Of a stretch of 64,000 nucleotides of DNA, positions 1 through 60,161 are shown in pieces (the stretch's first letter is position 1; every line of letters starts with the position of its first letter). The DNA lies in the sequence record LT960552.1. One strand, given 5' to 3'. Both the position numbers and the translations under genes were made by a program. A model generated the notes under the pieces. That model was given only the letters and a program-made list of their open reading frames with translations, did no database searches and had not been told where the DNA came from.

Positions 1-1299
1 GCATCCGTAATTGGAACAAACTTAAATATTGTATTCCCAACTTCTGGTGGTGGCGGTAGCACCGCAATTCCTGGATTGTTTACATCTTCACCTCCAGGAA
101 GTATAATGCAATATTCATTAATTTCTGGACAAAGTGTTTCATCAATTCGTGAACAACTTAGTGGTGAATCTGGTGGTCAAGCTGGTCGTGACGGAAGTTC
201 ATCTTCACCTTTTGTAACAAAAACTGGTTGGTGTTTTGGTGATGGGTTGTATTGGACATGGAATGGTGAAGGTGGATCTATAACAAAATTAGTTCCTAAT
301 TTAAACCAAAATGCATATCTTAAAGGAATTACAACAACTGGAATTACAAAAACTGATGCAACTATAGCAGGTTCTGGTAGTATAAGTTCAACTTCAATAA
401 CTGCACCACAACATTATCATGGGACTGGTATGATGTTGGGGTTATCTGGTCAAGTTGCTGATGATGCTATGTTCATAAGTAATAGAGTATGGAATGATGG
501 AATTCAATACCAAGGTGTTCAAATAACAGGTGATGTTCAAAGTAGAGTTGTAGGAAATGTAAATGGTTCGGATTCAAGAACAGCATTAAGTACCACATTG
601 GCTATATATACAGGTTCTGACACAACATCCCATACACATACATTAACTAACAACGATGTTGCACATTTTAATGTTGCAATGGTATATAATATTGCTGAAC
701 CAAGTTTAGCACTTAATCAAACTGCTGGTGATGCTAGATATGTACTTAAAGCTGGTGATATAATGACAGGTTCATTAACTATTGCTAACTCTGCAACAAT
801 ATCTACCAATGATACTAGTAATATATTATGGTTTAGAAACGCAGCAGGTCTAGAACGTGCGGCTATATATCATAATTCAACAACTAATACACTTAGATTA
901 AGAAGTAATGGTGGTAATGAAGTTACTATTAATCAGGTAGGAAATTTAACTGCACCTACCTTGACAGTAACTGGTGTTGCAGCAACAGGGCCATTAACAG
1001 TAACTGGTAGAATAGTAGCATCTGACGATATATGGGCGTTTTCTGATATTAGATTGAAAGAAAATATGATTCCTATTGATAGTGCACTTGATAAATTGGA
1101 AAAAATTACTGGATATATTGGTAATATGATAGGTGAAGATACTAAACGTTCTATGGTAAGTGCACAAGAACTTCAACAAGTATTACCTGAAGCGGTAAGT
1201 ACTAAAGATGAGTATTTGACAGTTAACTATTCTGCTATTATACCTCTATTAATTCAAAGTATTAACGAATTAAGAGAAGAAGTAAGGAGTAAAAAATAA
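1..1299 (+). CDS. Tail fibre protein, 5'-truncated, with C-terminal peptidase S74-type intramolecular chaperone
   Basis: Frame 1 is open from base 1, so the gene starts upstream. The body is Gly/Thr/Ser-rich and has a fibre motif (ARYVLKAGDIMTGSL). The C-terminus has AFS|DIRLKEN...ALDKLEKITGY...SAQELQQVLPEAV...VNYSAIIPLLIQSINEL. Confidence 0.85.
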   Translation, partial: ASVIGTNLNIVFPTSGGGGSTAIPGLFTSSPPGSIMQYSLISGQSVSSIREQLSGESGGQAGRDGSSSSPFVTKTGWCFGDGLYWTWNGEGGSITKLVPNLNQNAYLKGITTTGITKTDATIAGSGSISSTSITAPQHYHGTGMMLGLSGQVADDAMFISNRVWNDGIQYQGVQITGDVQSRVVGNVNGSDSRTALSTTLAIYTGSDTTSHTHTLTNNDVAHFNVAMVYNIAEPSLALNQTAGDARYVLKAGDIMTGSLTIANSATISTNDTSNILWFRNAAGLERAAIYHNSTTNTLRLRSNGGNEVTINQVGNLTAPTLTVTGVAATGPLTVTGRIVASDDIWAFSDIRLKENMIPIDSALDKLEKITGYIGNMIGEDTKRSMVSAQELQQVLPEAVSTKDEYLTVNYSAIIPLLIQSINELREEVRSKK

Positions 1300-1865
1300 T
1301 GGCAATACCTTGTACTGGCACAATAAAAGCTTCTGATATAAATGTCGAGTTGGGACGTCCAACAAATGGTACATTTAAAATTGGAAGTCCAGATGAACGT
1401 GCATTAGCAGGTAAACCATCTGGTTTAATTAAATTTAGTGATTTTTATTGTAAATCTGCCGCAGATCCATTACCTTGGAATGCATTCTCTTTACAAACAA
1501 TTGGTGGTCGCCCTATTAGTGGTGGTGTAGCACAATTATGGAACATTGATGGTAGTACTATTGGTATATGGGGTGGTTCTGTTGGGTTAATAAAATTCAA
1601 TAATCATTTTTTACGTCCAATAACACAAGTAACGTTCCAAACTTATTATCAAAATACAAATGCATGGCATACTGTATTTGTTTATGAAAGAACTAACACT
1701 GGTTCACAAGTAGCTTTAGGAAATTATGTTGGATTACAAACTTTCACGTTAAATGTTAATGTTCCTGCTGGTCAAGAGTTATGGTTTACTCTTTATGGTG
1801 GCGGTGACCAAGGAGATGCAAACTTAATGGATCTCTTTAGAATAACAAATGTGGTATATGCATAA
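1299..1865 (+). CDS. Tail fibre-associated adhesin-like protein (gp38-type N-terminal attachment motif)
   Basis: N-terminus MAIPCTGTIKASDINVELG...ALAGKPSGLIKFSDFYCKS is typical of proteins that cap fibre tips; overlaps the fibre stop codon. Confidence 0.55.
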   Translation: MAIPCTGTIKASDINVELGRPTNGTFKIGSPDERALAGKPSGLIKFSDFYCKSAADPLPWNAFSLQTIGGRPISGGVAQLWNIDGSTIGIWGGSVGLIKFNNHFLRPITQVTFQTYYQNTNAWHTVFVYERTNTGSQVALGNYVGLQTFTLNVNVPAGQELWFTLYGGGDQGDANLMDLFRITNVVYA

Positions 1866-1877
1866 TAAAAAGATTTT

Positions 1878-1906
1878 TGGAACAGGAAAAAATGTTCTGG
1901 TATAAT
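1878..1906 (+). promoter_or_regulatory. TGRAAY-class extended -10 promoter
   Basis: TGGAAC-N17-TATAAT with TGG before the -10. Confidence 0.75.
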
Positions 1907-1910
1907 AGAG

Positions 1911-1942
1911 GCATCCTAATGAGAAGTTAGGGTGCTTTTTTT
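1911..1942 (+). terminator. Intrinsic terminator overlapping the predicted transcription start
   Basis: GCATCCTAA-N7-TTAGGGTGC followed by T7. Confidence 0.6.
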
Positions 1943-1958
1943 ATACATGGAGAACCAT

Positions 1959-2261
1959 ATGAGCAAGAAAACTGAATCTAAGATCGAAGCACATGATTTA
2001 AATGATGTACAACGTAAAAAATTGAAAGATGGTTTAAATTCCGCAGTAGTTCAACTGTCTCACCTAGATACTCTTAAAGAATCATATGCTGATTTTATGG
2101 ATACTTTAGCAGATGAAATTGGTCTTGACAAGGGTAAATTGAAAACAGCAGCAATGCGTATCTATAAACAAGATTTCTTTGATAAAGTACGTGCACAAGA
2201 TGAAGTAGAAACAATTTTAACCGTATCTGGTAATTTATCAACACCAATGGATGATGAATAA
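1959..2261 (+). CDS. DsbA-like double-stranded DNA-binding protein
   Basis: GGAG plus ATG at 1959. LADEIGLDKGKLKTAAMRIYKQDF...DEVETIL resembles T4 DsbA in size and pattern. Confidence 0.5.
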   Translation: MSKKTESKIEAHDLNDVQRKKLKDGLNSAVVQLSHLDTLKESYADFMDTLADEIGLDKGKLKTAAMRIYKQDFFDKVRAQDEVETILTVSGNLSTPMDDE

Positions 2262-2266
2262 AAAAA

Positions 2267-2296
2267 TAATGCCTCAATGATGAGGCATTAACTTTT
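2267..2296 (+). terminator. Hairpin/terminator
   Basis: TAATGCCTCA-ATGA-TGAGGCATTA, then ACTTTT. Confidence 0.55.
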
Positions 2297-2322
2297 AAGT
2301 ACGTGAATTATAAGGAGATAAG

Positions 2323-5300
2323 ATGTATATAGATGGATATATGGAACGAAAGAGGACAAAAGAAGTCCTTCACGTGGCTGAACGTGTTAATGGTAAACGT
2401 ATTTTGCGAGAAATTGAACCTGTTTATGAGTATTTTGTAGAATCTCCATCAGGAACATTCAAAACTATCAATGGTACTATGGCTGAAAAGTTTGAATTTA
2501 CTAGACATCATGAAATGAAGCAAACTATGGAGAAATTACCTAGTACTGCAAAGATTTATGAATCTGATTGTAATGTTACATTTAAAACTTTAGCAAAACA
2601 CTATATGGGTAAGCCATCTCCAGATTTAAATATAGTATTTTTCGATATCGAAACTGATTTTCATCCAAAATTTGGATATGCATCTCCAAGTGATCCTTTC
2701 AACCGAGTAACTGCAATTTCTTTATATCAAAGCTGGACAGGAAAGGACTATGTTCTTACAATGGCACCTTCTGATATGGATAATGTAGAAGCACAAGATA
2801 TTATCAACCGTTTGAACCACGAAACTAATGACCCTAACAGTACTGTATTGTTATATACAGATGAAGCTGAAATGTTTTCGGATTTTTTCGATTTGATTGA
2901 AGATTCTGACATTTTATCAGGATGGAATAGTGAATTTTATGATATTCCTTATATGGTTAATAGAACTCGTAAGATATTCAACGAAGCGACTTTAGCTAGA
3001 TGGTGCTTGTGGAATCGAAAGCCAAATGCTCGTGAAGCTGATATGTTTGGTAAAACTATTGTAACATATGACCTAGTTGGTCGTGTACACTTAGATTATC
3101 TTTCATTATATAAGAAACATGCTGGTCAAGTAGAACAATCTTATAAATTGGACTATATTGCTGAAAAAGTAACTGGTGAAAACAAAGTTTCATATGATGG
3201 TTCATTGGATAAGTTGTATCGAGAAGATTACTTAACGTTTTTACGTTATTCTAAACAAGATAGTATTCTATTAAAGAAAATAGATGATAAAATGGACTTC
3301 ATCAATCTACATAACCGATTGGCTCATAAAGAATGTGTACTTATTAGTACTACAATGGGTTCAGTGGCATTGATTGATACTGCTATCATTAATCTATCTC
3401 ATAAACGTGGTGAAGTAGTATTCAATAAACGAAAACTTGATGATGAAGATGAAAGTTATGATTATCAAGAATATGAAGATTATGATGATGAGGATGAAGA
3501 CGACGAACCAAAAGCAGGATCGAAAGCCGCAGGTGCATGGGTACAAGATCCAGTACTTGGATTAATTGACTTCTTGGGTTGTATTGACTTTAACTCATTA
3601 TATCCAACAGTATTACGTGCGTTAGGTATGAGTACTGAATGTATTCTTGGACAATTGCGTCAAACATATACTGATGCATATCTTGCTGAACGTATTGATG
3701 AACAACGAATGAAATTCCGTGGAAGAGGTAAATTTGAACCTAAATGGACTGAAGCATGGCATGGTTTATTTGCTAGTGTTGAATTTACAATGGTTCGTGA
3801 GAAATCAGACGATATTATCACTGTAGATTTGGAAGATGGTTCATCATTCCAAGCATCTGGTGCAGAATTATATGATATTATATTTGGTGAAGATAGTACT
3901 ATAGTATTAAGTGCTAATGGTACATTGTTTGATAAAACCAAGTATGGTGTAATTCCTGAAATTCTTACTATTTGGTATTCTGAACGTAAAGCTCAGCAAA
4001 AAATGGTAATCGATTACAAACATCTTGCAACGGATGGTTGGGAATTAGCAAGTGAAATTGTTTCTGAATTAGAAGAAGCATTAAAATTATTACAATATGG
4101 TAATAGTTTGCATAAAACGAACTTACATGAAGACGACCCTGTATATCTTATTAGATTAGCATTGGGATCTGGTGATATAAGTTCAGCAGCTAAGATCATT
4201 GCTGATAATGGTATGCGTTTTGAAGGTGGTAAGTTGTATTCACCTGAAGAAGATAAAAAGTACTGTAAAGTTCAATCATCTTTCTGGAAACAGAATCAAC
4301 AAATCCGTAAAATTTTGTTAAACTCACTATATGGTGCGTTATTGAACAAAGGTTCTAGATTCTTTGATAAGAGATTAGGTCAATCAGTAACTTTAACGGG
4401 TCGTAGTATGACTAAACACCTTGCAAGTAAGATTAATGAAGTATGTACTGAAAATTATGATCATGGTGGTGGTGTAGTTGTATATGGTGATACCGATTCT
4501 GTGTATTTTAGTGTAGCACATTATTATAAAGAGAATGATATTTCATTTGATTTATCTAAAGAAGAAGTAATTGAGCTATATCAAATGATTGGTGATACAG
4601 TAGGTTCATCATTCCCATCATTTATGGATGAAACCTTTAATACTGGTATAGATAATGGTAAAATTGTAGGGGCTGATCTGGAAATGGTAGGTTCTCGTGG
4701 TCTATTTTTGAAAAAGAAACGCTATGCTATACTAAAATATTGGGAAGATGGTTTCCGTTTAGATGTTGAAGGTAAACCTGGAAAAGTTAAAGCAATGGGT
4801 CTTGAAATTAAACGTTCAGATACACCAAAATACATTCAAAATTTCTTAGAAGACACATTAACATCATTGCTTGTTGGGTCAGAAGAAGATGTATTACGTG
4901 CGAAAGTTCGTGAATTCAAAAAGCTATTCAAAGATCGTCCTTCATATGAGAAAGGTCAACCTAAAACCGTTAAAAATTATTCTAATAAATTTAAAGAATA
5001 TGAAGAAACTGGTAAATGTAGAGTTGGACATGTTCTTGCAGCAATACAATGGAACAAATTACGTACTATATATGATGATATGACTGTTCCAGAAGCAACT
5101 GATGGAACTAAAGTTATAGTTTGTAAGTTAAAACCAAATCCATATGGTATTACATCGGTTGGCTATCCTATTGACTGTACCGAATATCTACCAGAATGGT
5201 TTTTATCATTACCATTTGATGACGATGATATGGAAAAAGCAGTACTAACTAAAAAATTAGGAAATATATTTGGTATTTTGGATATGGACTTGGCTATTGA

Positions 5301-5349
5301 TGAAAAAAGTTCAATTGAATTGAATACTGGTTTCCTAGAGTGGATATAA
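2323..5349 (+). CDS. gp43: Family B DNA polymerase (T4 gp43-like)
   Basis: Exonuclease motifs FFDIETD, GWNSEFYDIPY and YKLDYIA; polymerase motifs DFNSLYP, KILLNSLYG, YGDTDS, KKRYA and GLEIKRSD. Confidence 0.97.
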   Translation: MYIDGYMERKRTKEVLHVAERVNGKRILREIEPVYEYFVESPSGTFKTINGTMAEKFEFTRHHEMKQTMEKLPSTAKIYESDCNVTFKTLAKHYMGKPSPDLNIVFFDIETDFHPKFGYASPSDPFNRVTAISLYQSWTGKDYVLTMAPSDMDNVEAQDIINRLNHETNDPNSTVLLYTDEAEMFSDFFDLIEDSDILSGWNSEFYDIPYMVNRTRKIFNEATLARWCLWNRKPNAREADMFGKTIVTYDLVGRVHLDYLSLYKKHAGQVEQSYKLDYIAEKVTGENKVSYDGSLDKLYREDYLTFLRYSKQDSILLKKIDDKMDFINLHNRLAHKECVLISTTMGSVALIDTAIINLSHKRGEVVFNKRKLDDEDESYDYQEYEDYDDEDEDDEPKAGSKAAGAWVQDPVLGLIDFLGCIDFNSLYPTVLRALGMSTECILGQLRQTYTDAYLAERIDEQRMKFRGRGKFEPKWTEAWHGLFASVEFTMVREKSDDIITVDLEDGSSFQASGAELYDIIFGEDSTIVLSANGTLFDKTKYGVIPEILTIWYSERKAQQKMVIDYKHLATDGWELASEIVSELEEALKLLQYGNSLHKTNLHEDDPVYLIRLALGSGDISSAAKIIADNGMRFEGGKLYSPEEDKKYCKVQSSFWKQNQQIRKILLNSLYGALLNKGSRFFDKRLGQSVTLTGRSMTKHLASKINEVCTENYDHGGGVVVYGDTDSVYFSVAHYYKENDISFDLSKEEVIELYQMIGDTVGSSFPSFMDETFNTGIDNGKIVGADLEMVGSRGLFLKKKRYAILKYWEDGFRLDVEGKPGKVKAMGLEIKRSDTPKYIQNFLEDTLTSLLVGSEEDVLRAKVREFKKLFKDRPSYEKGQPKTVKNYSNKFKEYEETGKCRVGHVLAAIQWNKLRTIYDDMTVPEATDGTKVIVCKLKPNPYGITSVGYPIDCTEYLPEWFLSLPFDDDDMEKAVLTKKLGNIFGILDMDLAIDEKSSIELNTGFLEWI

Positions 5350-5360
5350 AAGGAAAATAT

Positions 5361-5813
5361 ATGAATAACTATGACAATCTTTTTCAAAGAATTGGAGAAG
5401 CATTAACTTCTGGTGGTGAATATAACATTATTCGTGCTAATGATGATAATGAAATTGCCATTTTGAATAATGCTGGATTTGTACAAATCGGATCTATGAA
5501 AGATGGAGACACTATAGTGTCTCTATTTAAAATTGAGTTAAAAGCAAAAGAAGTTATTAAAATAGTAGAAGTACCTACTAAACTATCACCACCTTGGAAT
5601 AATTCTCCAATTGATCGTCAACCATTTTGGGATAATTCACCAAATGACCGTCAACCTTACATAACAAATACTCCACATATAATGTATAGTACTGGAACTG
5701 GTGATACATCAGAATGGATGTATAAAAAATACAACAATTCTGTAGATCTTACTTTATCAACAGAACTATACAAATTAGCAACTCTTAAAGCACCTAAACA
5801 TAATAATACTTAA
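5361..5813 (+). CDS. Hypothetical protein with an 11-aa imperfect tandem repeat
   Basis: AAGGA RBS before ATG 5361; WNNSPIDRQP / WDNSPNDRQP. Confidence 0.6.
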   Translation: MNNYDNLFQRIGEALTSGGEYNIIRANDDNEIAILNNAGFVQIGSMKDGDTIVSLFKIELKAKEVIKIVEVPTKLSPPWNNSPIDRQPFWDNSPNDRQPYITNTPHIMYSTGTGDTSEWMYKKYNNSVDLTLSTELYKLATLKAPKHNNT

Positions 5814-5819
5814 AATTTT

Positions 5820-5848
5820 TGAAACGTATACAATTAATCTGGTATAAT
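5820..5848 (+). promoter_or_regulatory. TGRAAY-class extended -10 promoter
   Basis: TGAAAC-N17-TATAAT with TGG. Confidence 0.75.
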
Positions 5849-5879
5849 TGTATACGTTAACAACATGGAGAATTAACAA

Positions 5880-6611
5880 ATGGAATTACGTGACGTACTA
5901 CGCGACCTAGTAACTACAACTGCTGGAATTGATTTTGATTGTATCGCTATTTCTAGTGAAGATCGGGGTCAAGGTCAACGAATTTATATGGAAGCATATA
6001 CTGGCGATAAAAACTTAGTTATGAGAGCATATACTAAGGAAGATGTACCTGAAGTTGTTGGGCGTTTTGGTATTGGTAATCTTGGAATGCTTCAAGGTCT
6101 ATTAAATCTAAATGTTTACAAATCAGAAAGTACTAAAATAAGTGTGAATGCAAAAGATGGTATTGTAAAAAGTCTTTCATTTGCTTCAGACGATGCAAAC
6201 ACCAACTATCTAGTAGTTGCAGAAAAATTTATTCCACCTCAACCACGTTTCACTGACAAACCATATGACGTACAGGTTACACCTAGTGCTTCAAAAGTCA
6301 ATGAGCTAAAAAGCTTCTCAGGAGTGTTTAAATCATTCACTGCTCACGTTACTCCCTTTACTGAGAACGGAAGTTTGTATTTTTACGTAGGTGAGAAGAA
6401 TAAAAATAACCATACAGGTACATTATTATTCTCTAAAACAGATGGTGAGTTATCTCAAGGTTATGGCTATCCTATTGAACGTGTTCTACAAGCATTGAAC
6501 CGCGTATCCAATGCTGAACAAAAATCAATTGGGATTACCAAAACTGGTATGTTTAATGTAACAGTAGATACTGGTATTGCAGTTTATAGCATCTATGTAA
6601 GTGGTTGCTAA
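5880..6611 (+). CDS. Probable DNA polymerase sliding clamp (gp45-like)
   Basis: 243 aa with an alternating alpha/beta pattern and GRFGIGNLGMLQGLL; follows the polymerase. Inferred from size and pattern. Confidence 0.5.
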   Translation: MELRDVLRDLVTTTAGIDFDCIAISSEDRGQGQRIYMEAYTGDKNLVMRAYTKEDVPEVVGRFGIGNLGMLQGLLNLNVYKSESTKISVNAKDGIVKSLSFASDDANTNYLVVAEKFIPPQPRFTDKPYDVQVTPSASKVNELKSFSGVFKSFTAHVTPFTENGSLYFYVGEKNKNNHTGTLLFSKTDGELSQGYGYPIERVLQALNRVSNAEQKSIGITKTGMFNVTVDTGIAVYSIYVSGC

Positions 6612-18345: not shown

Positions 18346-18361
18346 TTTTTTGAGAGAATAT

Positions 18362-19201
18362 ATGACAGAACTTGATAAATTTTTTAATAATGTTATGGTT
18401 CTAGACACTGAAACTACTGGTGTTGATGATGAATCTGATATTATTGAGTTTAGTAGCTCATTTCCAGAAGGAAGTAATGATTCTTTTGATGGAATGATGA
18501 ATTTTACTACTAGATTCAAACCAACACATGATGTTCCACCTGATGCGTCAGCAGTACATTTTATTACAACTGAAGATTTGATAAATGAACAGACCTATTC
18601 AGTTGGACATTATGATTTTTACCCATTATTCAAACTAAAACAGTACTTTGTAGGACATAATGTGCAGTTTGATCGAAGAATGCTTCGTAAAAATCATGAA
18701 CGTATGTTTGATGACGAATTTCCAGAATTTGAGGATGACAATAGTTGGATTTGTACGTTAAAATTAGCTAAAAAATTATTTGCAGAAGACCCTGAGTTTA
18801 AAAACTTAACTTTAAGCTATTTGTGGTTCAAATTTGAGTTGTATAAAACATGTACACGTAAAATTGTACCACATAGTGCTGAAGATGATGTATATATGTG
18901 TTATAAAGTACTTTCTCATTTAGTAAATATTGCTATTGAACGTGGGTTGGTTGATACCAATAAGGAAATTGGACGACAACTGGTTAAATTATGCAATACT
19001 CCAACTTTATTCACCGTAATGACTATTGGTAAGCATAAAGGTATGTTACTTGATGAAGTACCAATGAATTATTTAAAATGGATGATTTTGAACATGGATA
19101 TTGTAAATCCAGACATGCCTAACTATGATGCTGACTTAGCATATACAGTTGAAGTCGAGATTACTCGTCGCATTGATGCTGGATTGGTGGATTTTAGTTA
19201 A
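18362..19201 (+). CDS. DEDDh 3'-5' exonuclease (ExoX/DnaQ-like) with a small C-terminal domain
   Basis: VLDTETTG, VGHNVQFD, HSAEDD; C-terminal IGKHKG...VPMNYLKW. Confidence 0.88.
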   Translation: MTELDKFFNNVMVLDTETTGVDDESDIIEFSSSFPEGSNDSFDGMMNFTTRFKPTHDVPPDASAVHFITTEDLINEQTYSVGHYDFYPLFKLKQYFVGHNVQFDRRMLRKNHERMFDDEFPEFEDDNSWICTLKLAKKLFAEDPEFKNLTLSYLWFKFELYKTCTRKIVPHSAEDDVYMCYKVLSHLVNIAIERGLVDTNKEIGRQLVKLCNTPTLFTVMTIGKHKGMLLDEVPMNYLKWMILNMDIVNPDMPNYDADLAYTVEVEITRRIDAGLVDFS

Positions 19202-21726: not shown

Positions 21727-22574
21727 TGTTTGATTTTACTGGTTTACCTACTTCCTCTTTGGAGGAAGAAGAAGTTACTACATCTCAAATCAAGTTAGAT
21801 ATGAATCTATTGCTTGAAAAAATTGATATGGCAGATTATGGATATTACGATTCACTTAGTGATAAAGAAAAGAAACATTTTCAACCTTATATTGTGTTAC
21901 GTTGGGCGAGTTCATTAGATGATTCCGTACAAGTAACATATACTGCAAAAAAAATTGAAAATGTATTCAGTAAATGGTCTGCTGGCGGGAAAGATGCGTT
22001 GAATGAGTTAAAAGACGAATTCAACAATTCGGGTTCTGGTACATGTATATCAGTAGCAAAGTATGAACATGCTAAGTATGATTGGAGAATTAAATTTGCG
22101 GTTAAAGATATTGAAAGTGCAAAATCTATTATTGAATATATGAAAGAATTTGGAATTACTGGACATGAGATTATATCATTAATTGATAGTACTACAATTA
22201 AGAATCATCTTATCATTCTTAATGAGATGGTAAATCAGAATTTTTGGGAAATGAAAAATCATCCTGAATTAGTATATCAACTTATGTGTTCAGTATCTGA
22301 GATGATTGGACCACAAAAACGTGCTCATAATTGGATATCACATTGCAAAGGTTTAAAGAACGTTGACAAAATGATATTTGATATTATAAAATTAACCCAA
22401 CCAGAAACTATTGCTGTTCAAATGAATGAAGCTGAATATAAAATTTTATTAAATTCATACACAAAAGAAACATTTGAAGATTTAATAAAAGAATTAGGTA
22501 CTGGTGAATCAGAAATGAAAACATTATTGAAACATTTCAAAGCTGAAAAAGAAAAATATGGCAAAAACAACTAA
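21726..22574 (+). CDS. Possible clamp-loader small subunit (gp62-like) with an internal insertion
   Basis: N-part (KKHFQPYIVLRWASS) and C-part (LNEMVNQNFW...HPELVYQLM...RAHNWIS) resemble the gp62 pattern; weak. Confidence 0.4.
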   Translation: MFDFTGLPTSSLEEEEVTTSQIKLDMNLLLEKIDMADYGYYDSLSDKEKKHFQPYIVLRWASSLDDSVQVTYTAKKIENVFSKWSAGGKDALNELKDEFNNSGSGTCISVAKYEHAKYDWRIKFAVKDIESAKSIIEYMKEFGITGHEIISLIDSTTIKNHLIILNEMVNQNFWEMKNHPELVYQLMCSVSEMIGPQKRAHNWISHCKGLKNVDKMIFDIIKLTQPETIAVQMNEAEYKILLNSYTKETFEDLIKELGTGESEMKTLLKHFKAEKEKYGKNN

Positions 22575-23277
22575 AGGGGCTGCAAAAGCCCCTATTTTTA
22601 AATGTAGGTTTTGTGATAAAGAATTCAAACGTGAAAGTACATTAATAACTCATGTTTGCATTAAACGTGATCGATATAATGATCGTGAATCAAGACCAAT
22701 GCGTGAAGCATATCGTTTATATATGATGTTTATGGAAGCTCATAGACTAGCAATGAAAAAGTCAGAAGAACCACTGATGCAATTTATCAAATCTAGATAT
22801 TTTAATGATTTCTTTGATTTTGGTCAATATATTTTATCACATGATATTCTAAATAAAGAACAATTCATTAAGTACATTTTAACTAGTGGGAAACCCGTAT
22901 TTGAATGGAAATCTCATAAAGTACTTGAAGAATGGGTTATAAAATGTATTAGAGAAGAACACCCTCGTAGAGCAATAGAACGTTCTATCAATGCGTTGGT
23001 AGAATGGGGTAATGTTACAGATAACGATTGGGTTGATTTTTTTGATAATGTAAGTACTGAACGAGCAATTATGTGGTTAGAAACAGGTAAAATTTCTCCG
23101 TGGTTAATATATATTGCAGATCCAGCTAGTGGAAACAAATTGTTAAATCGGTTTGGTGATTCAGATTTAGATTATCTTGTTCGTTTTATTGACCCAACAT
23201 ACTTTAAAATACTTCAAATACGTTATAGTGATGAAGTAAATGAAATACGAAGTTTATTAACAGAGGCTGGGCTATGA
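22558..23277 (+). CDS. Hypothetical protein with an N-terminal C2HC zinc finger
   Basis: FKCRFCDKEFKRESTLITHVC. Confidence 0.7.
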   Translation: MAKTTKGAAKAPIFKCRFCDKEFKRESTLITHVCIKRDRYNDRESRPMREAYRLYMMFMEAHRLAMKKSEEPLMQFIKSRYFNDFFDFGQYILSHDILNKEQFIKYILTSGKPVFEWKSHKVLEEWVIKCIREEHPRRAIERSINALVEWGNVTDNDWVDFFDNVSTERAIMWLETGKISPWLIYIADPASGNKLLNRFGDSDLDYLVRFIDPTYFKILQIRYSDEVNEIRSLLTEAGL

Positions 23278-23624
23278 AAAGTAAAATATACAGTGAACAA
23301 GAATTAACTACAGAAGAATTAGCTAAAAAAGAAGAATTGAAAGAAGATAGCAAACAACTATCAATTTTAAGACAAGGTTCTGTAACAGAAATTACAATGA
23401 GCGGGAAAACGTTTCAGGTTTCCGACCCTAAACGAATTGAACATGCAATTATAATTTTAGAACGACATGAAGAAGTCCTATTTACGTTAAGGCAACGTAT
23501 CAAAGAACAAACTCAATCTATTAATATTTTGCTAAATGAAATTGAGAAATTGAAATCTGATGTTCAGAGATTGAAAGAGGAAAGTAATAATGGATTTGGA
23601 TCACAAGAGTACACAAACTATTAA
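23274..23624 (+). CDS. Coiled-coil hypothetical protein
   Basis: ATGA overlap with the upstream stop; heptad-rich C-terminus. Confidence 0.65.
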   Translation: MKSKIYSEQELTTEELAKKEELKEDSKQLSILRQGSVTEITMSGKTFQVSDPKRIEHAIIILERHEEVLFTLRQRIKEQTQSINILLNEIEKLKSDVQRLKEESNNGFGSQEYTNY

Positions 23625-24240
23625 TTATAGAAAGGCAAGAACTGATATTGACATTGATTTTAAAGATGGAAAATCAGTTATTGAACAACTTCCTTGTACT
23701 AGAAGTGTTGAAAAAATCACAGAAGATGGTTTGATTCCACACAATAGTGGTATACATTTTGATAATATCCCAACTGACCCAATTTCTGGATTAGCATCTA
23801 TACCATATAAAGAAGCCGAAAGGTTAGGATATCAAAAAGTTGATATTTTATCTCAATCGGCTTATGTACATGTGCGTGATAGAAATCATCTTAAAGAATT
23901 GATGAATAAAGAACCAGATTGGAATTTATTATTGGTTCCTGAAATAGTAGATCAATTGTCTCAAATTAAGAAACATATAACTTTGTTGAATATATGGAAA
24001 CCTAGTAGTATCGATGAATTAGCAATGTTTATTGCAATGATACGTCCAGGTAAACGTCAATGTCAAAGTATGAATAGTTGGGACGAAGTTCGGGCTGTTA
24101 TTTGGGAGTATGATAGTATTGGACTCGATGCAGAAGGTAAAAAGTTAAGATACTTTAAAAAACCTCATGCATTCGCATATAGTTTGATGATAGTAGTTCA
24201 GTTAAATGCATTAGTAGAATATATTATTTCCTCTTCTTAA
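23590..24240 (+). CDS. DnaE (Pol III alpha)-like catalytic palm fragment, C-half
   Basis: RTDIDIDF, HNSG, GYQKVDIL, PSSIDELAMFIAMIRPG and YFKKPHAFAY are collinear with DnaE PDFDVDF, HAGG, GLVKFDFL, ALFRPG and FNKSHSAAY. Confidence 0.85.
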   Translation: MDLDHKSTQTINYRKARTDIDIDFKDGKSVIEQLPCTRSVEKITEDGLIPHNSGIHFDNIPTDPISGLASIPYKEAERLGYQKVDILSQSAYVHVRDRNHLKELMNKEPDWNLLLVPEIVDQLSQIKKHITLLNIWKPSSIDELAMFIAMIRPGKRQCQSMNSWDEVRAVIWEYDSIGLDAEGKKLRYFKKPHAFAYSLMIVVQLNALVEYIISSS

Positions 24241-24577
24241 GAGCAATATTTCTACGTTTAATTCGTTTCGTTGGCAGATCACTTAAAGAGATTACTGGAC
24301 CTGAAATAACTTTCACATGGTCAGTATTAAAACGTTTTGTATAGTTTTCGAATTTTTCCATTTCCTCTTGCATAAAAAGGCAAATAGGAATAGTTCTATT
24401 ACTTTGCCACCACCAATTATTGGCTAAAAGTAGCAATTCTTCTTGTAAGGATTCATCCATCTCATGGAAACAGTACAAAGTTATGTATTGTTTACTTTTG
24501 ATTTTGATTATCCCATAGTAGATTACATCGTCGTGCTCTATGACCGTCACGAACGGATAAGTTTTGTGTTCATTCAT
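24224..24577 (-). CDS. Conserved hypothetical protein
   Basis: WWWQSNRTIPI motif; GGA RBS; TATAAATA upstream on the minus strand. Confidence 0.7.
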   Translation of the reverse strand: MNEHKTYPFVTVIEHDDVIYYGIIKIKSKQYITLYCFHEMDESLQEELLLLANNWWWQSNRTIPICLFMQEEMEKFENYTKRFNTDHVKVISGPVISLSDLPTKRIKRRNIALKKRK

Positions 24578-26724: not shown

Positions 26725-28206
26725 ATGGCAATTAATACTAACACGGACGTTAAAAAATATGATATTCAATACCAACTATATTTGCTTTCACAAATTTTTA
26801 GTACTCCCGATTTATATGTAAGATGTAAAAATGTTTTAAAACCTGACTACTTCGATAGAGAATATCATGCTAGTATTCAGTATGTTCATGATTATGCAGC
26901 TAAGTATAATATAACTCCAACTTTAAATGATATTAAACATAATTCGGATTTTACATTTAATGAAACTCCAGTTGGTGATTTAAATCAACAAGCAGTACTA
27001 GATAGTGTAGGTGAATTTTGTCGGCATAAAGCATTAGCACAAGCAATTCAACAAGGAATGGAATTAGTTAATCAAAAACGCTATGGTGGAATTGAAGAAT
27101 TAATTCGTGAAGCAATGTTGGTGAGTGTACAAAATGATTTAGGTTTAGACATTTATGAAGATCCTGAAGAAGTTATAAGTTCATTAGCAACAATGCAAGG
27201 GACTTTTAAATCTGGATGGGAAACTCTTGATTATAAATTATTTGGTGGTTTTGGTCGCCAAGAATTAGAAATATTTGCTGCTGCATCTGGTGGTGGTAAA
27301 TCTGTAGTACTTCAAAATTTAGCAGTTAATTTTAGTAAAGCTGGTTTGAATGGTGCATATATTACATTAGAACTTGCTAAAGAACTTGTTGCAGTTCGTA
27401 TATATGGTATGTTAGTTAATACTGCACAGATTCGTGTTAAAGTTGATATTGATGAAACTGCTGCTAAAGTTAAAATTGAAGAAAGAACAAATGGTAAATT
27501 ACGTGTTCATCGACTTCCTGAATCAGTAACAACCGTTAATGATATTGAAAGTTATATTCGTGAATTACAAATTAAAACAGGTATTAAACTAGATTATGTT
27601 TGTGTGGATTATCTTGATTTATTAACATCAGACCGTTGTGGTCCAAATGATAAATCAAACGCTTTCGTTAAAGATAAATTTGTATCTGAAGAATTACGTG
27701 CACTTGCTATGAAAATGGACTTAACGGTATTCACTGCATGTCAGTTTAACCGTAGTGGTGTTGGTGGTGAAGATATAAAAAGTCAAGCACAAATTGCAGG
27801 TGGTATTTCGAAAATTTATACCGCAGATAATGTAATTTACATCGATGCTCGTAAAGATCGTGGAGAAATGGTATTTGATTTCCAGAAAACACGTAACAGT
27901 TCAGCAGTAGGCTCACGTTTAGTTATGTCATATGATGTAGACTCATTAAGAGTACTTGATCATTATCAAACCATTCAAGAAATGCAAATTAATACTTCAT
28001 TTAGACATAGTGGTAAGGTTATGGTTGGTAATGGTGATCTAATAGCTAACCCTACTATATCTGCACCTAATGCATTGAACAAATTACAAAATACGTTATC
28101 AACAGTAAATCAAAAATCTACCATTCAAACATCGACTGATATAAATACACCAAAGGCTGATGATAAAGTTTCAAATATACGAAACTTTTTGAATGGTAGG
28201 ACATAA
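26725..28206 (+). CDS. gp41: Replicative DnaB-like helicase (gp41-like)
   Basis: GGFGRQEL, ASGGGKS, ITLEL, VDYLDL, TACQFNR and KTRN. Confidence 0.93.
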   Translation: MAINTNTDVKKYDIQYQLYLLSQIFSTPDLYVRCKNVLKPDYFDREYHASIQYVHDYAAKYNITPTLNDIKHNSDFTFNETPVGDLNQQAVLDSVGEFCRHKALAQAIQQGMELVNQKRYGGIEELIREAMLVSVQNDLGLDIYEDPEEVISSLATMQGTFKSGWETLDYKLFGGFGRQELEIFAAASGGGKSVVLQNLAVNFSKAGLNGAYITLELAKELVAVRIYGMLVNTAQIRVKVDIDETAAKVKIEERTNGKLRVHRLPESVTTVNDIESYIRELQIKTGIKLDYVCVDYLDLLTSDRCGPNDKSNAFVKDKFVSEELRALAMKMDLTVFTACQFNRSGVGGEDIKSQAQIAGGISKIYTADNVIYIDARKDRGEMVFDFQKTRNSSAVGSRLVMSYDVDSLRVLDHYQTIQEMQINTSFRHSGKVMVGNGDLIANPTISAPNALNKLQNTLSTVNQKSTIQTSTDINTPKADDKVSNIRNFLNGRT

Positions 28207-57320: not shown

Positions 57321-57623
57321 ATGTTTCATCCATTTTTCGACCCATCATCTTTAAGTGATAAAGAACTATATGATAAAATAACTGAAGTTTCTGTTAGAAT
57401 CTCTGCTGCTAGAACATCAGGGATTCAATATGAAATTATACAATCAATGTACACATTAATTCACGCATGTGAAGAAGAGATTAGAACTAGGCAAGCTCAC
57501 AAAGATCTTGAGAGTGCTTCTAAGGAAGATAATTGTGTATTTGATTCAGATAGTTATTTAAATGACAAAGATGATAAAAATAATGAAAATACAAAAAAAC
57601 AGAACTATAAGCGAGGATGGTGA
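57321..57623 (+). CDS. Hypothetical protein
   Basis: AAGGA RBS; MFHPF start. Confidence 0.65.
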   Translation: MFHPFFDPSSLSDKELYDKITEVSVRISAARTSGIQYEIIQSMYTLIHACEEEIRTRQAHKDLESASKEDNCVFDSDSYLNDKDDKNNENTKKQNYKRGW

Positions 57624-58101
57624 TGTTCGTTTAGATCTGAATGCTGTTGTTTATGCTATAAACTGCGGCACAGACATTACTTATATCCAGCTTAATGAGC
57701 AAGATGAAGTTGAACGATTGAAGTTCAATGATAATTGTAAAAAATTTGGACTTACTGAACGTATGCTAGATTATAAAATAGAACATGATAAAAATCATGA
57801 ACTATGGAGATATGATCCAGTATATGATAAAATCAACTTAGAAGATTATTTCCTTTCTTTATGTAGTACTGATGTTGAACGTGATCGAGTACTATATGAA
57901 TTAGGATTGTATGAAAATTATAATATGACCAAACTATTAAGATGTATGATATGGTTGGTAGATTATCTTGACGAACATAATATTTTTTGGGGATTAGGTC
58001 GTGGAAGTTCAGTAAGCAGCTTTTGTTTGTATTTGATTGGATTACATTTGGTTGATTCAGTGAAATACGAATTAGATGTGAACGAATTTTTGAAATGGTA
58101 A
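57562..58101 (+). CDS. DnaE (Pol III alpha)-like fragment, N-half
   Basis: DRVLYEL...NIFWGLGRGSSVSSFCLYLIGLHLVDSVKYELDVNEFLK aligns with DnaE ERLETEL...[39 protein letters not shown]; the true start may be 57571 or 57583. Confidence 0.85.
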   Translation: MTKMIKIMKIQKNRTISEDGDVRLDLNAVVYAINCGTDITYIQLNEQDEVERLKFNDNCKKFGLTERMLDYKIEHDKNHELWRYDPVYDKINLEDYFLSLCSTDVERDRVLYELGLYENYNMTKLLRCMIWLVDYLDEHNIFWGLGRGSSVSSFCLYLIGLHLVDSVKYELDVNEFLKW

Positions 58102-58150: not shown

Positions 58151-58531
58151 ATGAAGAAACATACTAGCTATCGCGGTCAAAAAATCGATATGGAAATGTT
58201 GAAATTTCAGCATCAATATAGTGTAGCCGTTGGTAACGCAAACATGAATGCACGTGGTGACATTATTGGTCGCGGCGGCACCGTTGTTAAAAAGCGTGAA
58301 GATTTATTGGCAGAACGTGAACGTGAATTACAAAAACCTGATATCAGTCCAGAACATCAAAGCCACTCAATTGCTCCACAAATGGGCGATCCTATGTCTT
58401 TTGCAGATAATGGATTTGATGATACACAGTTTGAAAGTACTCCAACAGGTGATTATATTGAAGAACCAGTTGAAAAGAAAGTACCAGTAAAACGTGCAAA
58501 AACTAAAGACGCTGATACAGACCAAGAATAA
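58151..58531 (+). CDS. Conserved hypothetical protein
   Basis: RGQKIDM...AVGNANMNARGDIIGRGG. Confidence 0.7.
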   Translation: MKKHTSYRGQKIDMEMLKFQHQYSVAVGNANMNARGDIIGRGGTVVKKREDLLAERERELQKPDISPEHQSHSIAPQMGDPMSFADNGFDDTQFESTPTGDYIEEPVEKKVPVKRAKTKDADTDQE

Positions 58532-58541
58532 GGAAATTAAC

Positions 58542-58862
58542 ATGGAGTCAAAAGTACTTAATGCCTGTAAAGGTAAGGTTTTAGTATCTAACTTAGATTC
58601 AGGTGAACAAGTTTTAAAATCAGGAATTGTCCTTAGAGATGATGATGGTAAAGTACGTGGTGTACATAGTCGATGGGCTAAAGTATATTCAGTAGGTGAA
58701 AATGTTACCGATATCGAAGCTGGTGAATGGATCTTAGTATCTCATGGTAGATGGTCAAGAACTATCACAGTCGAAGGTATCTCATTAAATTTAGTAGATT
58801 ATCCTAAAGGTGTACTTGCAGCATGTAAGGAACGTCCAGATTTTCTTGGATTAGGATATTAA
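58542..58862 (+). CDS. Second, divergent GroES-like co-chaperonin
   Basis: GKVLV...KSGIVL...AKVYSVG...IEAGEWILV; AAGGA RBS before ATG 58542. Confidence 0.7.
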   Translation: MESKVLNACKGKVLVSNLDSGEQVLKSGIVLRDDDGKVRGVHSRWAKVYSVGENVTDIEAGEWILVSHGRWSRTITVEGISLNLVDYPKGVLAACKERPDFLGLGY

Positions 58863-58908: not shown

Positions 58909-59208
58909 ATGAGTATAACAATAGATAATAAATTTAATTTTTATGATGTTAAAATAATTTCTTCCAATAAATCTGGTAAATTTTATTTTGAAGTAGTTAA
59001 AAACAGATCTAAAGTGTATGAAGTATCTGATGATTTATTTAAAACTATGCTGGTTTCAGCGTCTATGCAACAAAATAATAAATCGATTGGAGCAAGTACA
59101 AGTACACGTGCAAATTCATTTGAATACTTATTTGATCAATTAGAAATGACCGAAGATATTTTTACAGCACTATTATATCCAGAATGGATAAACGAAAACA
59201 AGGAATAA
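58909..59208 (+). CDS. Hypothetical protein (start uncertain)
   Basis: ORF fills the gap; no clear RBS. Confidence 0.5.
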   Translation: MSITIDNKFNFYDVKIISSNKSGKFYFEVVKNRSKVYEVSDDLFKTMLVSASMQQNNKSIGASTSTRANSFEYLFDQLEMTEDIFTALLYPEWINENKE

Positions 59209-59210
59209 TT

Positions 59211-60161
59211 ATGACAAGTCTATGGACCGAAAAGTACCGACCACAAAATGTTGATGAATATGTATTCAAAAATCCAGCGTTTAAATTAAAGATGGAAGAA
59301 TGGATCAGTACTGGTCAAGTCCCACATATTGGATTTTTTGGACCAGCAGGGACTGGTAAAACTTCTGCCATTAAAGTACTAATTAATGGTTTAATACAAA
59401 ATGGATTTGTTGATTCATTTGATGTTACCATTTTAAATATGTCAGATGAAGGTATTGATGCAGTACGTGAAATCGAAAATGCTGCTAGATTATCTACCAT
59501 TGGTGATTATAGAATCTTCGTACTAGAAGAAATGGAACAAATGGGCTTTAAAGCTCAAGGTTCATTAAAACGTATTATGGAAGACTATCATGAGAATGCT
59601 AGATTTATTCTTACATCAAATGAACCACACAAAATTTTAAAACCAATCATATCTCGTGTACAAACCATTAACATTGAAAAACATGATCAAGATGAATTCA
59701 CTACTAGAATTATTGAAATCCTAATCAATGAAGGTGTAGAGCTAGAAACTGAAGAAAGTTTAGATTTGGTTAATAAGTATATTAAATGTACTTTCCCTGA
59801 TTTCAGAAAAACATTAAACACGTTGCAAAGTTCAGTAGTTGGTGGTAAATTAGTAAAATTAGAAGATTCAGTTGATAGTACTGCAAGTTATAGAGGGGCA
59901 ATTGTAGATGCATTAAAAGCAGGGAATATTAGACAAATGCGTGAACTTATTGTTCAAAATATTCCAGAAGATGAAATTGATGGATTCTTTACATTTTTAT
60001 ATCAAAATGTTGATATGTTCACCAATGACAGTATTAAAGAAATGAAAATAAAAATCAAAATTCGTGATGCTGTAGTAAAACAAGCAAGTGTATCTGATAG
60101 AGAAATGAATTTATCTGCACTTTTATGTGAAGTTGATCTTATTTGTAATGATCAAATGTAA
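59211..60161 (+). CDS. gp44: Clamp-loader AAA+ subunit (T4 gp44/RFC-like)
   Basis: LWTEKYRP, GPAGTGKT, FILTSN, ISRV and PDFRKTLN. Confidence 0.92.
   Translation: MTSLWTEKYRPQNVDEYVFKNPAFKLKMEEWISTGQVPHIGFFGPAGTGKTSAIKVLINGLIQNGFVDSFDVTILNMSDEGIDAVREIENAARLSTIGDYRIFVLEEMEQMGFKAQGSLKRIMEDYHENARFILTSNEPHKILKPIISRVQTINIEKHDQDEFTTRIIEILINEGVELETEESLDLVNKYIKCTFPDFRKTLNTLQSSVVGGKLVKLEDSVDSTASYRGAIVDALKAGNIRQMRELIVQNIPEDEIDGFFTFLYQNVDMFTNDSIKEMKIKIKIRDAVVKQASVSDREMNLSALLCEVDLICNDQM

Follow-up and report, generated by a model that had tools for sequence, protein, structure and literature searches.

The closest described system is the 'minimal, split DNA polymerase III alpha' that Iyer, Anantharaman, Krishnan, Burroughs and Aravind identified in silico in group 2.2 jumbo phages (Iyer et al., 2021, Viruses 13:63; PMC7824862). 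In that work it was presented as a phage-specific minimal polymerase III (Pol III) catalytic module made of two proteins whose genes lie far apart, an N-terminal nucleoside triphosphate (NTP)-binding protein and a C-terminal Mg/template-binding protein; the phages that have it also encode a family B polymerase, UvsW, an RFC clamp loader and a capsid protein of the gp23 type. Here, two such genes, called the C-half and the N-half below, were analysed in a stretch of 64,000 nucleotides (the window) of Yersinia phage fHe-Yen9-03. Megablast showed that both regions are 100% identical to this phage (LT960552.1, 186001–250000) and near-identical to fHe-Yen9-04; the two phages belong to the genus Eneladusvirus, Rak2-like jumbo myoviruses with genomes of about 353 kb. 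We consider it likely that a single minimal C-family (Pol III alpha/DnaE-type) polymerase core is encoded in two parts by these genes, whose products would assemble non-covalently, add deoxynucleoside triphosphates (dNTPs) and play an accessory part in replication or repair.

The pair of fHe-Yen9-03 is the same entity as the split Pol III alpha of Iyer et al. (2021) and does not differ from it in kind: the two genes stand alone and far apart, with a gap of about 33.3 kb between them, and a family B polymerase, UvsW and RFC are encoded as well. fHe-Yen9-03 also has a DnaQ-like exonuclease, which is no domain of the alpha subunit, and no other Pol III domains. The text of PMC7824862 does not name fHe-Yen9-03, but it lists Atu_ph07 as a group 2.2 phage, and in Atu_ph07 both halves lie in the same gene neighbourhoods as in fHe-Yen9-03. 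The minimal split Pol III alpha was therefore already known computationally, and the initial annotation of the window, which had pointed to a miniature DnaE core divided between two genes, is a correct rediscovery of it. A 172-residue 'truncated' Pol III alpha had already been noticed in the CBB paper, and later genome papers listed the annotation and nothing more. Full-text literature searches found no biochemical or functional study of any member of the split pair. What is added here to the account of Iyer et al. (2021) is the natural fused forms, the conserved micro-synteny, the values of the ratio of nonsynonymous to synonymous substitution rates (dN/dS) and the mapping of the steric gate.

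The full-size relatives of the pair are the DnaE/Pol III alpha subunits known from structures of Escherichia coli (2HNH), Thermus aquaticus (2HPI, 3E0D and 4IQJ) and Mycobacterium tuberculosis (5LEW and 7PU7). DnaE and the phage pair share, in collinear order, a palm nucleotidyltransferase core with its GS loop and three carboxylates, an RPG finger motif and a KSH..Y steric-gate helix. DnaE, however, is one chain of 900–1200 residues with PHP, thumb, complete fingers, clamp-binding/HhH and OB domains, whereas the phage proteins have 172 and 216 residues and lack these parts; between the DxD motif and the third catalytic Asp there are about 150–165 residues in DnaE and about 62 in the C-half. 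A second precedent is the full-size DnaE of cyanobacteria, which is encoded by two distant genes (DnaE-n and DnaE-c) and whose chains are joined by a split intein. It resembles the phage pair in that a C-family catalytic subunit comes from two distant genes, but its break point differs from that of the phage split, and no intein domain was detected in the phage halves, which also have no room for one. Assembly of the phage halves would therefore be non-covalent.

Both open reading frames (ORFs) described in the initial annotation exist, although the start of the N-half had to be corrected. It had been placed at 57562; the most likely start is 57583, which gives a protein of 172 residues, was chosen by the depositors and agrees with the length of nearly all relatives, and the ATG at 57562 is probably not used. 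In the depositors' record each half is named 'hypothetical protein' and in RefSeq each is named 'DNA polymerase'. The coordinates of all features are listed in Table 1.

Table 1. Positions of the two half-genes, their neighbours in the window and comparison loci in other sequences
Sequence	Feature	Coordinates	Strand	Remarks
Window	Family B DNA polymerase, 1008 aa, presumed main replicase	2323..5349	+	PF03104 E 5e-21, PF00136 E 7e-21
Window	Stand-alone DnaQ/epsilon-like 3'-5' exonuclease	18350..19201 (annotated start 18362)	+	PF00929 E 7e-18; 4.4 kb upstream of C-half
Window	239-aa protein	22558..23277	+	Two genes upstream of C-half; weak sub-threshold C2H2 zinc-finger match, residues 14-34
Window	C-half, putative minimal Pol III alpha core	23590..24240	+	216-aa ORF; phrog_11778; DnaE profile and fold matches
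Window	phrog_11637 protein, 117 aa, function unknown	24224..24577	-	Convergent; overlaps 3' end of C-half by 17 bases
Window	DnaB/gp41-like replicative helicase	26725..28206	+	phrog_19 E 8e-67; 2.5 kb downstream of C-half
Window	N-half, putative minimal Pol III alpha core	57562..58101 (probable start 57583)	+	179 or 172 aa; PF07733; phrog_11127
Window	phrog_14844 protein, 126 aa, function unknown	58151..58531	+	Directly 3' of N-half
Window	Cpn10-like 'head morphogenesis' gene	58494..58862	+	After phrog_14844
Window	RFC-type clamp-loader small subunit	59184..60161 (annotated start 59211)	+	1.1 kb downstream of N-half
L004	Fused mini Pol III gene	1066..2193		Metagenome contig
L006	Fused mini Pol III gene	519..1649		Metagenome contig
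L005	552-aa PF03090 'Replicase' + HTH gene	1516..3174		P0371 locus; 8-kb Joint Genome Institute (JGI) metagenome contig
L005	P0371 gene	3171..4181		P0371 locus; same contig
L025 (OP172775.1)	Interrupted DnaE-type gene of Clostridium phage CS266P1, with its insertion	2957..4195, 4385..4873, 4999..6525		Coding sequences

Relationship of the two halves to DnaE

All of the phage motifs quoted in the initial annotation were found in the 216-residue translation of the C-half: RKARTDIDIDF (residues 14–24), HNSG (51–54), GYQKVDIL (80–87), PSSIDELAMFIAMIRPG (138–154) and YFKKPHAFAY (188–197). They contain the DxDxD strand (D19/D21/D23), the third catalytic Asp (D85, with K83), the RPGK finger motif (R152/P153/K155) and the steric-gate helix (H193/Y197). 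An alignment of 28 sequences, with identities down to 38%, showed that 16 residues are invariant, namely D19, D21, D23, H51, G54, P61, Y73, K83, D85, W111, P138, R152, P153, K155, H193 and Y197. The C-half matched the PHROG 'DNA polymerase' family phrog_11778 with an E value of 1e-105. Its match to PF17657, a family on record for some relatives, stayed below the threshold (12.2 bits), and the NCBIfam search of the C-half gave no match.

A search of the PDB with the single C-half sequence gave chance matches only, to PrfA and a kinesin, and a family profile was needed. The result of the search with a profile built from the 28 sequences showed that the seven best matches were Pol III alpha chains (best E 0.01) and that the sole other match was a weaker one to an unrelated chain (E 0.34). 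On M. tuberculosis DnaE1 the profile aligned in four collinear stretches, covering the DxDxD motif (412–424), the region from the third-Asp strand to the RPG motif (568–673), the KSH..Y helix (773–788) and one weak stretch; on E. coli alpha it aligned in two collinear stretches. The DxD and D85 strands align with the catalytic-Asp strands of DnaE, so that D19, D21 and D85 correspond to D401, D403 and D555 in the active-site numbering of E. coli alpha (PMC8485763). In the same way, H193 corresponds to E. coli H760 and Y197 to Y764, and the RPG motif to residues 639–641 by profile. E. coli H760 is the steric gate against ribonucleotides and has been termed invariant in Pol III alpha (PMC8485763). 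The proposed equivalence of HNSG to the HAGG motif of DnaE held in part: its position and pattern fit, H51 and G54 are invariant, and it is placed where a similar H-x-x-G motif lies in a full-length phage DnaE, but none of the profile methods tried on the C-half aligned it to DnaE.

The AlphaFold model of the C-half had a predicted local distance difference test (pLDDT) score of 91.3. When it was compared with the PDB by Foldseek, the top 12 matches were all DnaE/PolC, with a probability of 0.93–1.00 for the best eight. Among the viral models of BFVD, ranks 2–25 were mostly named phage DnaE-type polymerases, and several were nameless. The identity of the C-half rests on collinearity, on the invariant residues and on the exclusive ranking of DnaE matches. 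A different label, 'putative membrane protein', based on one TMHMM helix, is attached to the C-half in GAP32 (GAP32_282; L010, 61..711) and in several Erwinia phages; it was rejected because the hydrophobic C-terminal helix is the finger helix that bears the steric-gate His. In Atu_ph07, the annotated start of the C-half gene (gp074; L007, 5001..5561) lies 22 codons 3' of the start of the tblastn match, which begins at query residue 19. Judging from the match, the annotated gp074 probably lacks DxDxD owing to a mis-called start.

The N-half gave a firmer match to Pfam. Residues 106–178 matched PF07733 with 31.9 bits, compared with a gathering score of 23.9 (E 1.4e-7), and the protein matched the PHROG 'DNA polymerase' family phrog_11127 with an E value of 5e-84. 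A 29-sequence profile of the N-half matched only Pol III alpha in the PDB, and its last 72 or so residues aligned to residues 321–392 of E. coli alpha, 385–454 of the T. aquaticus enzyme and 335–406 of M. tuberculosis DnaE1. Invariant among the 29 sequences were G144, G146-R147-G148-S149-S150 and S153, that is, the G-x-GRGSS nucleotide-binding loop. The palm helices and this loop occupy residues ~104–179, and residues 1–100 form a family-specific N-terminal region. The AlphaFold model of the N-half had a pLDDT of 82.0, and its top 16 Foldseek matches in the PDB were all DnaE/PolC (probability 0.93–1.00 for the best six; E ~0.01; template modelling (TM) score 0.3–0.4). Thus, profile, Pfam and Foldseek searches with the halves gave DnaE/PolC as the top matches for each of them, and the resemblance goes well past what chance would give.

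The two profiles meet on DnaE. On M. tuberculosis DnaE1 the N-half profile stops at residue 406 and the C-half profile begins at residue 412, leaving about six residues between them. This agrees with the initial annotation, in which the segment that precedes DxD in DnaE was said to be encoded 33 kb away from the C-half, by the N-half gene. Furthermore, in the natural fused protein P0300 (see below) a single unbroken PF07733 match (E 4.8e-16) spans the junction, including the DxD motif. The C-half had also been described as a collinear, heavily reduced palm with partial fingers, and this was borne out by the order of the profile stretches and by the spacing between DxD and the third Asp, which is about 62 residues in the C-half compared with about 164 in M. 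tuberculosis DnaE1 and about 160 in the enzyme of Clostridium phage CS266P1, indicating that the thumb has been deleted. The fingers are reduced to the two nucleotide-contacting motifs, and the C-half terminates at the steric-gate helix. Pfam searches found no PHP, clamp-binding/HhH or OB domain in either half, in line with the absence of these domains noted at the outset.

Distribution, fused forms and origin of the split

The occurrence of both halves was examined by tblastn over 50,697 phage records. The result showed matches to the C-half in 96 and to the N-half in 106 phage records, and about 100 jumbo phage genomes have both; the surplus N-half matches are weak ones to other DnaE-type genes in small phage records. 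The genus counts of the two halves match (C-half/N-half: Escherichia 34/34, Pseudomonas 11/11, Erwinia 8/8, Salmonella 8/8, Yersinia 4/4 and Xanthomonas 4/4), and among the records in which both positions could be checked there was no genome with one half only. The co-occurrence on which the initial annotation had made its proposal depend was thus found. Both halves are present in Rak2-like phages, Atu_ph07, Phosso, PA5oct-like phages, SCTP-2, XacN1, RAS14 and a Vibrio phage. The two are encoded separately in each of the phage genome records and lie 15–224 kb apart where both positions are listed: about 15 kb in XacN1 and RAS14, 34 kb in fHe-Yen9-03, 44 kb in PA5oct-like phages, 116 kb in SCTP-2, 182 kb in Atu_ph07 and 224 kb in Phosso. 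The proteins of Atu_ph07 are 41.6% (C-half) and 31.2% (N-half) identical to those of fHe-Yen9-03.

Selection on the two genes was estimated by the Nei-Gojobori method in six Rak2-like phages. The result showed that dN/dS was 0.014–0.137 for the C-half and 0.024–0.147 for the N-half, with dN values alike between the two. Both genes are therefore under purifying selection, with ratios of 0.01–0.15 rather than the value near 1 that had been named as evidence against a functional pair.

Among 1.84 billion cluster representatives from metagenomes (50% identity clusters), 680 relatives of the C-half were found. Nearly all of the 150 relatives listed are stand-alone proteins of up to ~230 residues, mostly 185–215; the two exceptions, the P0300 group and P0371, are natural fusions. 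The P0300 group consists of P0300, P0391 and P0392, single-chain proteins of 375–376 residues that represent three 90% clusters from different samples. The gene of P0392 (on L006) is in the usual setting of the C-half, with phrog_11637 and then phrog_14467 downstream. In a neighbour-joining tree the P0300 group was nested within the stand-alone C-halves, and it is most simply read from this tree as a secondary re-fusion. P0371 is a single chain of 336 residues on a long, deep branch; it has no counterpart of the first ~85 residues of the N-half, and D-x-D-x-E stands in the place of DxDxD. The start of its gene overlaps the end of the 552-residue PF03090 'Replicase' gene, and its contig looks like a small, non-jumbo element. 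In this setting a single-chain mini-polymerase is coupled to a plasmid-type initiator or primase family. The natural fusions tie the two halves into one unit.

A further arrangement that bears on the split was found in Clostridium phage CS266P1. Its full-size DnaE-type gene has a single interruption, an insertion containing an I-HmuI-like HNH homing endonuclease gene. The upstream coding sequence (CDS; 412 residues) ends just past the segment that aligned to the end of the jumbo-phage N-half (hhalign probability 97.6%) and has an apparent PHP-type N-terminal region, as judged by eye from the translation, and the downstream CDS (508 residues) begins with the DxDxD motif. With hhalign, the C-half profile aligned to the single sequence of the C-terminal CS266P1 part in the finger region only (probability 9.6%), and this alignment was set aside; hmmsearch with the filters off placed the C-half profile on the same part in three collinear stretches. 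The interruption of CS266P1 is thus at the same junction as the jumbo-phage split. The two cases differ in that the CS266P1 pieces are large (412 and 508 residues, with apparent PHP and thumb) and adjacent, with only the endonuclease gene between them, whereas the jumbo-phage halves are small and distant. An Rfam search for a group I intron in the insertion gave no match. The case of CS266P1 shows that mobile elements target this junction, and this offers a possible route to the jumbo-phage split.

The split pair has been proposed as a model of the ancestral form of the polymerase (Iyer et al., PMC7824862). Contrary to this proposal, the way in which the fused forms nest in the tree and the DnaE gene that an endonuclease interrupts suggest that reduction and splitting were secondary.

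Gene neighbourhoods

The C-half and the N-half each lie in a long co-directional block, and each overlaps its own upstream gene. The C-half block begins with the genes of the DnaQ-like exonuclease and the UvsW helicase; four small genes and one for a small virion protein separate these from the C-half, after which come the convergent phrog_11637 gene, a phrog_14467 virion protein, a hypothetical gene and the DnaB-like helicase. The N-half block comprises, in this order, topoisomerase II, a virion protein, phrog_15348, the N-half, phrog_14844, the Cpn10-like gene, a small gene and the RFC clamp loader. Both local gene orders recur in Atu_ph07 and in uncultivated phage contigs of 36–266 kb, implying that the split and both locations date to the common ancestor of a large clade.

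Several individual positions are kept. The phrog_11637 gene lies beside the C-half also in Atu_ph07 (L007) and in metagenome contigs L023 and L024, and beside the fused form on L006; phrog_14844 follows the N-half also in Atu_ph07 (L008) and in metagenome contig L021; and the trio of N-half, phrog_14844 and Cpn10-like gene is kept in Atu_ph07 and in a 226-kb metagenome contig. The DnaB-like helicase holds a like relative position in Atu_ph07 and L023, as does the RFC clamp loader in Atu_ph07, L021 and L022. The phrog_11637 and phrog_14844 proteins gave no Pfam match and no sequence match in the PDB, and could be extra subunits of the enzyme. The phrog_14844 protein has a basic N-terminus and an acidic tail.

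The family B polymerase that had been reported for this phage was confirmed by its two Pfam matches, and its orthologue is listed as gp43-like in the CBB paper. The DnaQ-like gene, named 'DNA polymerase exonuclease subunit' in RefSeq, stands alone, even though an exonuclease domain is already part of the family B polymerase. As a dedicated partner of the mini Pol III it was rejected, the link being loose by distribution: its close relatives occur in Rak2-like phages, PA5oct-like phages and one Vibrio phage, and also in many small phages outside the listed hosts of the mini Pol III, and among the matches listed (about one-third of the matching records) there was none for Atu_ph07, SCTP-2 or XacN1. 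In the part of the CBB virion proteome list that was examined, the upstream neighbour CBB_286 is named and the N-half, CBB_328, is not; the text of the CBB paper does not mention CBB_287, which is the C-half as judged from its RefSeq locus-tag number.

Predicted function of the pair

If the two halves form one active site, the palm helices and the GRGSS loop of the N-half would hold the triphosphate of the incoming nucleotide, as in DnaE, and D19, D21 and D85 of the C-half would bind the two metals. H193, which together with the RPGK motif belongs to the shortened finger module of the C-half, would select deoxyribose, and dNTPs would be added to a DNA 3' end by two chains assembled non-covalently and without an intein. 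Because thumb, clamp-binding and OB domains are absent, we infer an accessory or short-patch role rather than that of the main replicase; the predicted two-subunit enzyme would aid the family B replicase in primer extension, gap filling or repair. Of the roles listed in the initial annotation, DNA synthesis, in primer extension or in repair, is better supported than RNA tailing, nucleotide signalling or counter-defence, because the steric-gate His is invariant, both genes lie in replication modules and there were no matches to defence families.

Several points weigh against an active two-subunit polymerase. The shared active site is deduced solely from homology and from the natural fusions, and the literature searches gave no activity, complex or structure for any member. 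The statistics of the C-half against DnaE are modest (PDB profile E 0.01; Foldseek E ~0.01, TM 0.3–0.4), the Foldseek values being as expected for small fragments compared with 1000-residue targets. Neither thumb nor double-stranded DNA-binding domains are there to hold a primer-template, and the family B polymerase already present includes an exonuclease domain, which leaves the need for a second polymerase unexplained. With these points taken into account, the accessory polymerase core remains the likely explanation.

A more specific and bolder account can be given, which we regard as possible but doubtful. In this account the two proteins would form a functional DNA polymerase smaller than any other known member of the C family, which would hand off with the primase-helicase and the clamp loader in extending primers or filling gaps beside the family B replicase; the split would go back to a mobile element that inserted at the DxD codons, after which the halves would have drifted to separate replication modules; and the phrog_11637 and phrog_14844 proteins could replace the thumb and the DNA-binding domains.

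Of the other explanations, the one that survives best, although it is unlikely, is that the pair is an active Pol-beta-fold nucleotidyltransferase working outside replication, in template-independent tailing of DNA or RNA, in making a nucleotide signal or in counter-defence. The loss of the thumb and of all duplex-DNA-binding domains would leave little beyond a nucleotidyltransferase core, and the presence of the family B replicase would fit such a use. However, the invariance of the finger motifs and of H193, the counterpart of E. coli H760, argues for templated dNTP selection, and both genes lie in conserved blocks of replication genes. In addition, Pfam matched the halves to Pol III families only, and NCBIfam to Pol III-alpha-type models only, including the error-prone DnaE2 subfamily; other nucleotidyltransferase families (CD-NTase/cGAS-like, CCA-adding and MNT) gave no Pfam or NCBIfam match to either half, and PADLOC gave no defence-family match for either half or for the fused forms.

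It is quite improbable that the proteins are non-catalytic relics that kept the fold as structural or regulatory accessories of the replisome and lost polymerization. The reduction is extreme, much of the DnaE machinery is gone and no activity has ever been shown, which speaks for this reading, but no substitution is seen in the three carboxylates, the GS loop or the steric-gate His even among sequences as low as 35–40% identity, dN/dS is 0.01–0.15, and such residues are normally the first to go. Still less probable is that the two genes act independently, their shared DnaE ancestry having no functional meaning today. The genes are never adjacent and lie in different gene blocks, yet neither half has a complete site, the GS loop being in the N-half and the carboxylates in the C-half, and the matching distribution over phage genera, the similar dN values and the independent natural fusions all argue against it. 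Least credible is joining of the halves into one chain by a split intein or by trans-splicing, for which there is the established precedent of the intein-joined cyanobacterial DnaE as well as the DnaE of CS266P1, interrupted at the same junction by a homing endonuclease, since neither half matched a Hint/intein family at E values up to 1, as the initial annotation had also found no intein motifs, the N-half stops where the DnaE-homologous segment stops, the ~17 residues ahead of DxD in the C-half are too few for a C-intein, and the genes lie 15–224 kb apart, each inside its own long co-directional block.

Taken together, these considerations favour a minimal C-family polymerase core made of two proteins. 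If it is active, the pair would mark the minimal catalytic unit of the bacterial replicase family. Activity would also mean that two chains need no intein to form a polymerase active site, a point of relevance to the origin of C-family polymerases, and it would explain the presence of a second polymerase beside the T4-like replisome in a large and widespread clade of jumbo phages.

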